Below, one piece after another: positions 43,563 through 64,000 of a stretch of DNA of 64,000 bases. Source of the DNA: Bugula neritina (taxonomy: Eukaryota; Animalia; Bryozoa); the NCBI GenBank assembly GCA_964035545.1, contig OZ037766.1:12700722-12764721 (forward strand), in the 5' to 3' direction. The notes under the pieces were generated by a model that was not told the origin of the DNA, ran no database searches, and saw only the letters and a program-made list of their open reading frames with translations. Numbering within the stretch: the stretch's first letter is position 1; every line of letters begins with the position of its first letter. The translations under genes were made by a program, and so were the position numbers.

Positions 43563-45425
43563 ATGATCAAATTTCATTCTCTAGTAATACTGTGTCTGAC
43601 TATTGGACTAGTAACCTCTTATATGCTGACTGATGAATGTCTCAGCTGTTTAAGACAGGTAATGTGAACTTACAGGTATATTATAATCTACGATTATTTA
43701 ACAAATTGACATTTATAAATTTTTATCTTTTCACAATCTTTAATTTGCACGCATCAACATATTATAATGATGACTGTATATAACATTCATAGAAAAAGAA
43801 GGGAGATAAGACATGCCGGTGGAACTGGGGGAACAAGTCATGTGGAACATATCACATCACGGAGGAGTTTTGGTCTGATGCCTACCAGAGAGGATATTGT
43901 AAGTGTATCTGCCTAATTTTAAGTATAGTTGCTGCGTCATCATATTATATATTCTATACTGACAAGGCAAAAAGCCAGAAGCACATATAAAATATGTTTT
44001 ATAAAATGTACAATAACTCAAACTTCTATTTAAAATATTATTCTAAATATAGAAGTTTGAGTTTGCAGATAAAACTGAAATTATCTGTCACTCAGCACCA
44101 TGTACCGTTGGAAAGCTTAAAACTAATTACACGGATCTAGTTCAACACAAAACTGTATTGCACACTAGAGAAATTAAATTTATGATACATGCCAGTGTGA
44201 AAATGCGTAAATAAAAACCAGTATAGTTATGAACAGTAATATGATACATGTATAAGAGGTTTCACTCCAGATAGATGCTTCCCAGTTAGAAGTTTCCCAG
44301 TTAGATGCTGTTTTTTTATTTTGGTGCTACGTATAGTAATGTACGTGTATATATATATACTTATATAATTGTTGCATTGATTGCTAAACATGAAATAATA
44401 GATAATGTGAATTATCTGAAATAATATTCCAATTTTTCACTTATTTTTGCAGGACAGTAATTAATATACAATAATAATAAACGCTATCTTCAATAAATAC
44501 TTATTAATAAAAATAAGTTTTTAAGCAAGAAGTATAGACAATTCAAAATTAATTAGTTAATGCAGATCAATGGAACTACTTTCAAGACTTAAAGAAAATA
44601 TTTTATACTCTTGTTTCAATAATATATCGTATATATTTCAATAATAAATTACACATAAAATACATATATATCATACCAAAATACATAAATAGCCTCTAAC
44701 TGAAAAGCATCTATTGGAGATGGCACTTTGCAAGACACTGCTGCACAGATTGATTCCAAAATATATTTTTTGATGGGTATTTTGCTATGATCAAAATATA
44801 TCGAATTTGAAAAAAAATTCAATTTTTTAGTAACGAAGTGACCTATAGATCGTTTTTTATAGTAAGTTGATATTTAGATGCTACTTATATTAACAGATGT
44901 TTAAACATATATACGTACCTATTTTATTTTTCAACATTTAATTGTTATAGCTATTATTATTGCAGTTGGCAACTGGTAAAAGTAATGCAGATATCATACG
45001 GCATCAATTTAATTTTGAAGAATTATAAATTTTCTTTATAGAGAGTCTTTGAAGCTCTTATTTGTTTTTTCAATACACATGGCAAACCAGTTCTATCGGC
45101 TATACACAATGGTGATTAATGCAATACCATTAATGTATTTTTAATATACATTATTTTCAAAGATGCTTTATTTGTATGCATTTTTATCCAATGTAGCATA
45201 TTTGCAGCATATGAAACTTGTACTAAGGATGATCAATGTGCTGAGCAGAGCATGATGTCGTACTTCCGTCGATATGGTGAAAGATGTGCCAAACAACTGA
45301 AAAAGGAGACATACCAGCTGACTTGTGGAGATTATATAAGACTGCATGATGGAGGACCTGATGGTTGTTCTAAATTTAGCACTATCAATGCCTCAGGGTC
45401 AATAGACAGGTGCATGTCACGATAG
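43563..45425 (+). CDS. L5: secreted i-type lysozyme-like protein, catalytic Glu replaced by Lys
   Basis: Exons 43563-43658, 43793-43898, 45208-45425: MIKFHSLVILCLTIGLVTSYMLTDECLSCLRQ|KKKGDKTCRWNWGNKSCGTYHITEEFWSDAYQRGY|SYETCTKDDQCAEQSMMSYFRRYGERCAKQLKKETYQLTCGDYIRLHDGGPDGCSKFSTINASGSIDRCMSR*. Not called in the ORF track. Confidence 0.83.
44258..44727. mobile_element. MITE, same family as 27173-27669, in L5 intron 2
   Basis: GGTTTCACTCCAGATAGATGCTTCCCAGTTAGA... ...CTCTAACTGAAAAGCATCTATTGGAGATGGCACT; internal similarity to the 27.2 kb copy (CAAGAAGTATAGA, GCAGATCAA). Confidence 0.75.
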
Positions 45426-46324
45426 GGGATTTCAAGAAGAACATGTTTAGCTGCAGTGACAATTCCCTACTTTGTCAGATAAACACATATTCCTAAATCA
45501 TTCTGTAAACTTGTGTGGCTTGGTCGCTTTTGATTGTTAACTAAAATAGTAGTAGCCTAATCTTGCTTTTAGTGAGCAACCTTGATGTAAGCTGCATGTA
45601 CATTGTTAGAGATGCATAGGTTTTGCTTCTACCATGTCACCATGACTTCTTTTTACAATACAACAATATTGTAACTTATTCTAATAATAATTTTTGCTCT
45701 GAAAATACAATACAGCAAAAACAGTCACTCGCAAATGCATCACACGTTAAATATAATCCATGTAGTAAACTTTGTGGCAGCCATGTCTGATCAAAGTAGT
45801 ATAATCTACACCTTGAGGTAAAAAACAGTGCTTCTATATTAAGTTTGAGTTTAGTTGATTTAATTTAGTTAAAATAATTTTTAGCAACCTTTAAAGTTTA
45901 AGGCATCGTCAATTATACAACTTCCCATTTTATAGTCCAGATGTAAAAATCTCAGTGAATGCAAAAGTGTGTGAATAATTATTTTTTATTTTTTTGAAGC
46001 ATATTCTATTTTACAAGCATAGAAATATATAATTGCCTAAACTTAGATAGTTCATACTATAAACTGAATATAAAGCAATTAAAAATTGCAATGATACTTA
46101 CAGCATTTGGTTGAACAATAGAGCTTTGAATTTATTTAATGAAATTTGCAATCTTTTGTTCTGTTTTCTTTTAATATTATGTTTAAGAGTATAAATGAAA
46201 AACTTAATGTGATTAGCTATAATTTATTTGTCAAATTATTTAATTACTCTGGTAGAAGAAAAAATTGCTATTATGCAACAAATGCATTATTCTGGTATAT
46301 ATAGTAAAATTAATGATCACCAAA

Positions 46325-46472
46325 TATATATATATATATATATATATATATATATATATATATATATATTTATATATATATATATATATATATATATATA
46401 TATATATATATATATATATATATATATATATATATATATATATATATAGAATATATTATTGTATATATATAT
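46325..46472. repeat. (TA)n microsatellite
   Basis: Directly visible; borders the left arm of the inverted duplication. Confidence 0.97.
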
Positions 46473-46578
46473 AATATAAAACCATTCAATAAAAACTTAG
46501 AGTAGGTTTATCCCACAACATTCTAAATTATTAAAATGTATTGATTGAGATGAGAAATTGTAAGTATTTAGCACTTTA

Positions 46579-61427: not shown

Positions 61428-61993
61428 GGTGTCATCTCACTTAGACAATTCCGAGCTAGACGTTTCCCACATGGGCACTTCCCTCTTAGACAATACTTAT
61501 AGATTTTAGTGTAATATATGTATTTTATATTATTATTTAGCACATAATAGAAAACAAAGAAGCCATCAGCAAGCCACTTACAGTAACAATGCTTCTATAC
61601 CTAATTAAGAAGCCGTCTTGCACAGACCTTAAACTTAAACGTAAAAGATAGACAAAATACAATAAGAAAAAATATCAAATATTTTTATTAAGTATCTAGT
61701 ATATTAAAAAAGATTCTAGACAAAAAATGGCACAGTGAAGTTGTAATATAGCAGTATGCGATATACCAAGAAATACATTTGTGCATTTTATTCTGTTATT
61801 CTAAATAAAATAAACTGTAAGTTATAGCTAAATTAGTATTGCATTAAAGCAAATAGCTGGCTTGGTAGCTTATTTTATGTTTAGCAGAAAAGGCAACAGT
61901 TATATATGTATATTACTAAATATATTGTACTAAAATAAAAAAGTGTCTAACTGGGAAATGTCTAAGTGGGAAATGTCTAAGTAGGATGAAACT
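61428..61993. mobile_element. MITE related to the 27.2 and 44.3 kb elements
   Basis: Left subrepeats CACTTAGACA / TAGACGTTTCCCAC / CTCTTAGACA; right GTCTAACTGGGAAATGTCTAAGTGGGAAATGTCTAAGTAGGATGAAAC. Confidence 0.65.
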
Positions 61994-62691
61994 GTTCACA
62001 AAATCAGTGAGTATAACTTATTATTTTGAACCTATACAATGACGTCTAAACAAGAAAATTCAAATTATAGCTTTATTAACTGTCTTATATTCTTTGAAAA
62101 GAACAATCAACTTTACTATACGCATGCTTTTCTCACTATTGAAAAGTTAAGGACTATTAGGAACAGATTAAATCGCTGAGTGCAGAGCAATTCTTGAGCA
62201 CTACTTGAATTGAATGTAGATTCTTCTTAGTCTCTGAACTTCAAAGATTATTACGGCAAATACTTTATAAGCTGCAAACGTAAGCTAACTAATAATGTTT
62301 AGCAGAGCTTTATACCACCTAAGTCCCTCTGCAACAAACAGTTTCTTAAAGTTTTATTTAAATTGTAAACCTATAATAACAATATTAAGCTACCTAAAAA
62401 TAAAATTACAAGCAGATAAATCGGCTGTGACATAAAGATTTCATCAGAATAACCTGCCCTATGAACTCTATAAGCTTTAAACAGTCTTTACGTACACTAG
62501 CCTAAATCTGTTTTGCTGCAAGAAGGTAAGCAGGGTCTTTTCAGCCATCTTGGTATTGGGGTTTGTGATTTGTAGTATTTGAGTTTTTTGTGTTTAAAAT
62601 TAGATTTGTAATTTGTAATTTGTTTATAGGCAATCATCAACTGCTCAGTTGCATTTGCTTGATTACTTTAATAGTATATTCAACAGAGAAA

Positions 62692-64000
62692 ATGAGCAAG
62701 TTATACTCTCTAGTAATATTATGTCTGGCTGTTGGACTAGTAACTCCTCAGATACTGACTGATGAATGTCTCAGTTGCATAAGACAGGTACGGTGAATTT
62801 ATTAGCCTTAGAACCTTATATATACTATACCATCTGTATACCTTTAAAAGTTTAAAGAAGAGGGAATTAAGCTGCAAAAATTAATGCTTATCGTAACAGT
62901 TTGATTGTTGTTTGATCATCACATTAATATCGTAATTAAAGAAACTGTTTAACTGATACAACTAAGTTGATGACATCGTTTGACAGAATAAGAAAGGTAG
63001 CAATACTTGCTCTTCTTGGAGCCTGATGCACAGTCAAACTTGTGGAAAGTATCTTATCACACATTCATTTTGGAATGATTGCGGTAGAAGAGGAGTTGGT
63101 GAGAAATGTTTATACATTATTTTATCTAAGTTATGAGAAATGTAGTTACTATAGTTTTTAATATAAGCTAAGACTACATCTAATACATAATAAGTTTTTG
63201 AAAATTGGTTTTTTAAATGGTTGGTTTAATGTAGAGACCAACTAAAATACTGGTGGCAATTAATTTTACCTGAGGCACTCTTTTTAAACCTATTCATAGC
63301 ATGCTTTGCAGCAATTATAATAAAATCTATTATATATAATAATAATTGCATTTTTATAGTTGAACTGAAACATCGATGAAAGTTTTCTTTATGTTATTTT
63401 TTTCGTTCCTACTCCACAAAGTAAAGCATTATTTGGAAACTATAAAATCTAGCTATTTTGCTAGTTTACGATGACTAATGCCTCTAAAGCAATTGAAACT
63501 CCAATTTGGTCAACAAAGTGTGTCAGCCAACGTTTTCTAATGCTTAATGCCACATCTTATGATATCGCTTATAAGCAAGTATTTATACGTGACTTAATGA
63601 CAAAATAGGTGATCTAGAGTAGAAGCAAAATGCTAGTTTGGCAATTCAAATTTCCAATCCACGCCAGCTTTAAATTTTTGAATTATACTTTATCTAATCT
63701 CTCAAATAAATTACTATTTATTCTGTTACATAACTAATTAGCAATGAATGCATTTATCAAACTTTCATATATATATTTTGCCTTGCTGGTTATAAAAGAA
63801 TGCACTTTTTTACAGACTATGACAATGTATAACAAATGCCTGCTTTTCCATAAGCGTCAATGTTATGACTGTTAATTTATTGCATAAATATTGCGCTTTA
63901 TATAAATATTTTTGATGAGCAAATTATACTGAAATTTCTTTTATTTCCATTTCAGGTTTTTCAGAGTGCACTAATGACAATCACTGTGCAGGAGAATGTA
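62692..64000 (+). CDS. L10: secreted i-type lysozyme-like protein, Glu replaced by Lys; truncated by the window end
   Basis: Exons 62692-62787, 62987-63098, 63956->64000: MSKLYSLVILCLAVGLVTPQILTDECLSCIRQ|NKKGSNTCSSWSLMHSQTCGKYLITHSFWNDCGRRGV|GFSECTNDNHCAGEC... Confidence 0.83.

Follow-up and report, generated by a model that had tools for sequence, protein, structure and literature searches.

The genome of the bryozoan Bugula neritina holds a tandem array of invertebrate-type (i-type) lysozyme genes, part of which fills a 64,000-nucleotide stretch of contig OZ037766.1 (positions 12,700,722 to 12,764,721, hereafter the window), and in a clade of 12 intact genes of this array the catalytic glutamate is replaced by lysine. 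We read the proteins of this clade, with a probability of roughly 0.5 and from their sequences, as muramidase-dead, non-catalytic secreted binding proteins that would combine a fixed Lys anchor with a variable rim. A preliminary description of the same DNA had noticed the lysine in six genes and taken these for the whole subclade, mostly paired with a change of HNGG to HDGG; the charge reversal itself holds, the clade is larger and the pairing is looser than was supposed.

Ten three-exon genes, L1 to L10, lie in the window, and exon 3 of every one matches the destabilase family PF05497 at 32-47 bits against a cut-off of 26.2. The predicted N-termini are hydrophobic and by eye resemble signal peptides, and all the proteins carry 10-12 Cys. 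As first described, exon 2 has GAA (Glu) as its second codon in L1-L4 but AAG or AAA (Lys) in L5-L10, where the dipeptides are KK, HK, HK, HK, HK and NK. In window coordinates the genes are:

L1, 27890..29166, forward strand: Glu-retaining sister paralogue, YE, catalytic Asp absent, HAGG.
L2, 31097..32042, forward strand: Glu-retaining paralogue, YE, catalytic Asp absent, HHGP.
L3, 35746..37140, forward strand: Glu-retaining paralogue, YE, catalytic Asp absent, HHGA.
L4, 39950..41594, forward strand: Glu-retaining paralogue, YE, catalytic Asp absent, HHGP; tandem duplicate of L3.
L5, 43563..45425, forward strand: exons 43563-43658, 43793-43898 and 45208-45425; 139 amino acids with a signal-peptide-like N-terminus; KK, HDGG; one Cys pair missing.
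L5 Lys codon, 43796..43798, forward strand: AAG at the catalytic Glu position.
L6, 46579..48020, reverse strand: exons 48020-47925, 47610-47496 and 46805-46579; HK (Lys codon 47605-47607), HDGG; recent inverted duplicate of L8.
L7, 51205..52060, forward strand: exons 51205-51300, 51405-51510 and 51843-52060; HK (Lys codon 51408-51410), HNGG; spliced orthologous contig L049 / P0007.
L8, 54651..56082, forward strand: exons 54651-54746, 55075-55189 and 55859-56082; HK (Lys codon 55078-55080), HDGG.
L9, 58723..59813, forward strand: exons 58723-58818, 58931-59036 and 59593-59813; HK (Lys codon 58934-58936), HDGG; both introns observed spliced.
L10, 62692..64000, forward strand: exons 62692-62787, 62987-63098 and 63956 onward (the last 170 bases of exon 3 lie outside the window); NK (Lys codon 62990-62992); the HDGG falls in the outlying part.

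Past the window edge, Lys occurs in L11, L12, L14 and L16 (as YK), in L15 (RK) and in L17 (KK), so that the clade comprises 12 intact genes and one pseudogene, L13. The invariance of Lys among varying neighbours extends to this larger set, with Lys in 12/12 intact genes and both flanking codons variable.

Intron phase, gapless BLASTP alignment and the helix end of an AlphaFold2 model agree in placing this Lys at the position of the catalytic Glu. The canonical paralogues of this genome share the phase-0 intron, after which they read I-E, and K34 of the L5 orthologue falls on the Glu of a canonical paralogue with no gap. Full-length searches and the fold model relied on the database proteins P0002 and P0007, our own models being searched exon by exon; the joined spliced models were used for alignment, trees and codon tests. 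P0002 (Bugula neritina EB796_008546) is the nearest database protein, 87% identical over L5 exon 3 and in the same gene order, and its splice model is identical to that of L5, of which it is the orthologue. In its AlphaFold2 model (predicted local distance difference test, pLDDT, 93.6) Lys is the last residue of the first, central helix, and in Tapes lysozyme Glu18 closes helix 9-18 (PMC2976769). The model matches leech destabilase (8bbu) with a template-modelling (TM) score of 0.83, Z 19.6 and a root-mean-square deviation (rmsd) of 1.5 A, and is offset by one where its alignment with the Tapes enzyme begins, so that Lys falls on Glu18 if the helix is gapless. This fold match is not fully independent, because an i-type alignment went into the model and the match partly follows from that input; a single-sequence prediction gave a pLDDT of 44.7 and was discarded. 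The possibility that structural alignment would move Lys away from the Glu position thus failed, since BLASTP and the model both map it there.

A second way of losing the charge reversal, in which other splice acceptors restore a Glu, failed as well. In a probable RNA run L9 is spliced at the GT-AG joints 58818/58931 and 59036/59593, with exonic (spliced) contigs at a depth of ~3400 and intronic contigs at ~5, about 700 times lower (contig depth is a rough guide), and among the differences listed for these contigs none falls on the L9 Lys codon. For the L7 orthologue, a spliced contig gives R-Q-H-K-E over the junction. When alternative acceptors were enumerated in all 12 Lys genes, none in frame returned Glu to this position. 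In L7, an acceptor at +6 would place a Glu one residue early, but the spliced contig contradicts its use.

A tree built with the two trait codons removed unites the Lys genes in one clade (support 79/89). Within it L7, with Asn after the conserved His, is sister to L5, with Asp (97/92); the four YK/HNGG genes group together at 100/100. Under a codon model the overall ratio of nonsynonymous to synonymous substitution rates (dN/dS) is 0.31, and the site-wise check rejects neutrality at the Lys site (twice the log-likelihood difference, 2dlnL, 22.3). The probability that all 12 genes stay Lys is 7e-6 to 4e-5 at a neutral site; with every non-acidic residue tolerated it is 9e-5 to 3e-4. The latter value argues that selection has favoured Lys or a basic residue, and has not merely acted against activity. 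Two Lys codons, AAG and AAA, are both in use and the codons on either side vary, a pattern that speaks against gene conversion and against a splice signal. A second assembly has orthologues of L5 and L6, and a transcript contig represents that of L7; all three keep Lys, at proportions of nonsynonymous differences (pN) of 0.02-0.06 against synonymous differences (pS) of 0.10-0.22. Selection rather than decay, as the preliminary description had proposed, is thus borne out: the invariant Lys is encoded both ways, orthologues keep it at a pN well below pS, and L9 is spliced and deeply covered.

In destabilase the muramidase residues are Glu34 and Asp46, and the proposed isopeptidase residues are a Ser51-His112-Glu34 triad or a Ser49-Lys58 dyad (PMC10126035). 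In the Bugula clade the general-acid Glu (Glu18 / Glu34) is replaced by Lys in 12/12 genes. The column of the catalytic Asp (Asp30 / Asp46) holds Asp in 0/12 Lys genes and in none of L1-L4, the loop alignment being ambiguous in a few genes, and the accessory Gln is absent from both groups. As to the isopeptidase residues, the 12 genes keep His, have replaced Glu, vary at Ser49/Ser51 and have Ser or Thr at the Lys58 position throughout. By established lysozyme chemistry, peptidoglycan hydrolysis through the lysozyme mechanism is not possible without the general-acid Glu and Asp, and the Ser-His-Glu triad proposed for isopeptidase activity is broken too. Because Glu, Asp and the accessory Gln are gone and the Ser positions vary, neither muramidase nor isopeptidase activity is expected. 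Since L1-L4 are already without Asp and Gln, the canonical site was probably eroded in the wider subfamily before Lys arose; this apparent loss of the catalytic Asp from L1-L4 did not figure in the preliminary description. The 12 Lys genes have the attributes of pseudo-lysozymes, in that catalytic residues are lost, the genes are intact, expressed and under purifying selection, and an intact paralogue is present. By sequence, they are members of the i-type fold family and not of the active muramidases.

With i-type lysozymes and destabilase (PF05497, GH22i; 8bbu, 2dqa of Tapes japonica and 3ab6 of Meretrix lusoria) the clade shares the fold, at Z 17-20 and rmsd 1.5-2.1 A, the Cys framework, the invariant His, the H-x-G-G motif and, to judge by eye, a signal-peptide-like N-terminus. 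Against these enzymes the Bugula clade has Lys for the general-acid Glu, neither catalytic Asp nor accessory Gln, at most 12 Cys instead of 14, a hypervariable hairpin loop and, in 7/12 genes, Asp instead of Asn after the His. The same Cys pair, a Cys before the end of exon 2 and its exon 3 partner, is missing from L5 and L7, and at a position that is Arg in the transcript contig the L7 of the window has an additional Cys without a partner.

We compared the clade with 124 i-type domains from a protein search of 1.84 billion representatives. Glu is kept in only 36-37 of the 124, and Lys occupies its position only in two Bugula proteins and one protein of Seison nebaliae. The latter (SNEBB_009708, P0034) acquired Lys independently; its paralogue P0029 keeps Glu, and both have Leu for the conserved His. 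The one match identified in Watersipora is canonical (this was a protein search, with unannotated bryozoan genomes outside its scope), and a scan of metagenome contigs with P0002 gave no match. The muramidase-deficient i-type lysozymes of arthropods (Harmonia axyridis, Penaeus monodon, Procambarus) are secreted, as the Bugula clade presumably is, and share with it an i-type fold without the catalytic Glu; activity loss has been measured in Glu-less members (PMC10126035 table 1). However, the Glu-less domains retrieved have Ser, Ala, Thr, Leu, Val, Asn or Gln at the site and often a basic residue after the His, whereas the Bugula clade has Lys at the site itself. Lys or Arg directly after the His was found in 52/80 Glu-less i-type domains and in 2/31 with Glu.

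The closest precedent, which the preliminary description lacked, is in another lysozyme class: E73K of LYG1 is fixed in 11 anthropoid primates, human among them, while the paralogue LYG2 is intact (PMC4243810 table S4), and E73 of g-type lysozymes is equivalent to E18 of i-type lysozymes (PMC2976769). LYG1 resembles the Bugula genes in carrying the same substitution at the equivalent general-acid Glu, in secretion (presumed for the Bugula proteins) and in having an intact paralogue alongside. It differs in being a single-copy g-type (GH23) gene as opposed to a 12-gene array, and in mostly keeping its catalytic Asp residues, which are lost in Bugula. The literature searched yielded no description of an E-to-K switch in invertebrate-type lysozymes, no paper on Bugula i-type lysozymes and no report of ligand binding by these proteins.

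On the best tree, a single Glu-to-Lys change would have turned part of the tandem array into a clade of 12 presumably secreted pseudo-lysozymes, with lytic activity presumably left to the canonical genes of the same genome. The proteins may bind without catalysis, whether to recognise molecular patterns, to agglutinate or to manage microbes. The Lys amine would be the fixed point at which a cell-surface ligand is held by an anionic or carbonyl group, and specificity would be tuned by the variable hairpin loop. Consistent with such an arrangement, the helical side of the cleft is invariant (Lys, Phe-Trp, His, Asn/Asp and Gly-Gly), with strong purifying selection on Lys, His, Trp, Phe and Gly-Gly, and its lid is variable, paralogues sharing 26% identity in the hairpin loop and 60% in exon 3. 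Of the roles for Lys put forward in the preliminary description, a cationic pocket is ranked as the most plausible on present sequence data; in destabilase the Glu34 site binds a cation and adjoins His112 in the cleft (PMC10126035). Several results weigh against this view of a binding family. Monophyly of the Lys genes is not firm at the support obtained; selection for Lys only and selection for Lys or Arg are indistinguishable (P 0.06-0.11); and the computed isoelectric points of the Lys-clade proteins span 5.65-8.9, which is not uniformly cationic. No positive selection overall was detected (M2a against M1a, p = 0.99), so the hairpin loop may be relaxed instead of diversified. The trend for a basic residue after the His, finally, comes from only 2 independent pairs.

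Catalytically dead lysozymes are common and their ligands mostly unknown. Here the fixed Lys, a natural Asn/Asp second site, Glu-bearing sisters and canonical genes in one genome make a comparative series for the effect of charge reversal, and the same reversal is fixed in human LYG1. Bugula neritina is known for its bacterial symbiosis, in which setting the Lys clade would be a candidate recognition family.

The most serious competitor, which we consider unlikely though worth keeping in view, is that Lys is conserved for structure, capping the helix end and plugging a dead cleft, with function on another surface, for example in host-receptor signalling as reported for human LYG1. Lys does equal the core Cys and Gly residues in invariance, a second invariant surface set (Arg-Gln, Asp-Asp and Thr) lies outside the cleft motif, and 11 anthropoid primates have E73K in LYG1. 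By the title of Kawamura 2006 (cited in PMC4243810), the catalytic Glu of goose lysozyme is reported to be important for stability as well, and the title of a reference in PMC8449827 reports LYG1 to be active on CD4+ T cells. However, the i-type domains that lack Glu mostly have Ser, Ala, Thr, Leu or Val in its place and still fold, so Lys is not required for the fold, and variation is concentrated on the cleft lid.

A bolder proposal, and a doubtful one, is that the invariant Lys and His make up a chemical centre of a new kind or a site that binds anions specifically, the clade being a diversified microbe-sensing or covalent-chemistry family convergent with LYG1 E73K; if true, it would tell what an E-to-K lysozyme does. 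In its strictly catalytic form, with Lys and the invariant His (and Asn/Asp) as a Schiff-base, acyl-transfer or isopeptidase-like centre, we think it improbable. Lys and His are both invariant and are adjacent by homology, Arg is found in 0/12 genes, and isopeptidase activity has arisen repeatedly among i-type lysozymes (PMC10126035). Yet the candidate nucleophile positions Ser49/Ser51 are not conserved (Ser or Thr at the Ser51 position in 7/12), the His is more than 90% conserved across all i-types, Glu-less ones included, the absence of Arg is not significant, and the substrate loop is hypervariable.

Equally improbable is that Lys and the Asp of HDGG form a compensating salt-bridge pair that closes or reorganises the cleft. 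In this genome Asp after the His is limited to Lys genes (7/12 against 0/10 Glu genes), the position is only Asn or Asp within the Lys clade, and the residue follows His112, which adjoins Glu34 (PMC10126035). The preliminary description was right about HDGG in L5, L6, L8 and L9 and HNGG in L7, and the L10 motif beyond the window edge proves to be HDGG; across the clade, however, Asp follows the His in L5, L6, L8, L9, L10, L15 and L17 and Asn in L7, L11, L12, L14 and L16, so that the pairing had been overstated. Nor is HNGG the state of the adjacent Glu genes, as had been implied: L1-L4 have HAGG, HHGP, HHGA and HHGP, and HNGG is the state of the canonical genes. The five intact Lys genes with Asn include the expressed L7 and the fully supported four-gene clade. 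At least 3 changes between Asp and non-Asp are needed on the tree against 1 between Glu and Lys (the approximately unbiased test does not formally reject monophyly of the seven Asp genes, p-AU 0.09), and an unrelated protein, P0049, has HDGG yet retains Glu. An obligatory Lys-Asp pair is therefore not supported, since HNGG occurs in 5/12 Lys genes and L1-L4 have neither motif, and the tree rejects it as a general rule; a Lys-Asp salt bridge or Lys/His/Asp site as the general mechanism is likewise not supported. The Asp would instead be an optional second-site change and not a required partner of Lys.

That the Lys reflects neutral decay, gene conversion or a wrongly called splice site is very improbable, for although one array gene (L13) is a pseudogene, AG dinucleotides lie 6 bases downstream in some genes and about half of the sites are near-neutral, the splices of L9 and L7 are confirmed, no in-frame acceptor restores Glu, both neighbouring codons vary, the Lys codon varies synonymously and dN/dS is 0.31. 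A role as decoy against bacterial PliI inhibitors was considered and dropped, there being no evidence for it.

The array runs beyond the window to G000:C2:12.787 Mb. A genome-wide search with the exon-1-end pattern found 18 loci of the L1-L10 subfamily, 17 in the array and one, M1, 200 kb upstream. The pseudogene L13 (L032, G000:C2:12772489-12772760) reads HK and has an altered acceptor and an in-frame stop in exon 2; its exon 3 was not found. The array terminates at G000:C2:12.786 Mb in a canonical gene with Glu, Asp and HNGG, L18 (L033, G000:C2:12785638-12786503), whose intron 1 has an apparent GC donor (GCAAGG) in the genomic DNA. More canonical Glu/Asp/HNGG genes lie on contig C1 at 0.64-0.65 Mb. 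There a second i-type cluster (G000:C1:642800-678000, L035-L039) comprises about seven genes with an extra intron, both canonical copies and variants with HFGG, HKGG or YAGG; one gene has a repeated, frame-shifting exon 3 start and another an intronic insertion. More divergent destabilase-like domains (for example HFFG/HGFG) are found at G000:C2:28.32-28.35 Mb, C1:10.37 Mb and C2:7.61 Mb.

Within the window, an inverted duplication of ~3.4 kb (~46350-49720 and 52860-56300, 77-86% identity) contains L6 and L8. A 266-base structured insert at 56303-56568 on the reverse strand is flanked by (TA)n runs, with a fold z of -5.6 and a hammerhead-like core (CTGATGA...GAAA); Rfam gave no match at the gathering threshold over window positions 43000-64000, this insert included. 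Upstream of L1, at 26960-27016, an orphan exon-1-like fragment reads CLSCTRQ and then GT, with no start codon, and is probably a relic copy. Between L6 and L7, at ~50058-50150, lies a near-perfect inverted repeat with arms of ~45 bases.

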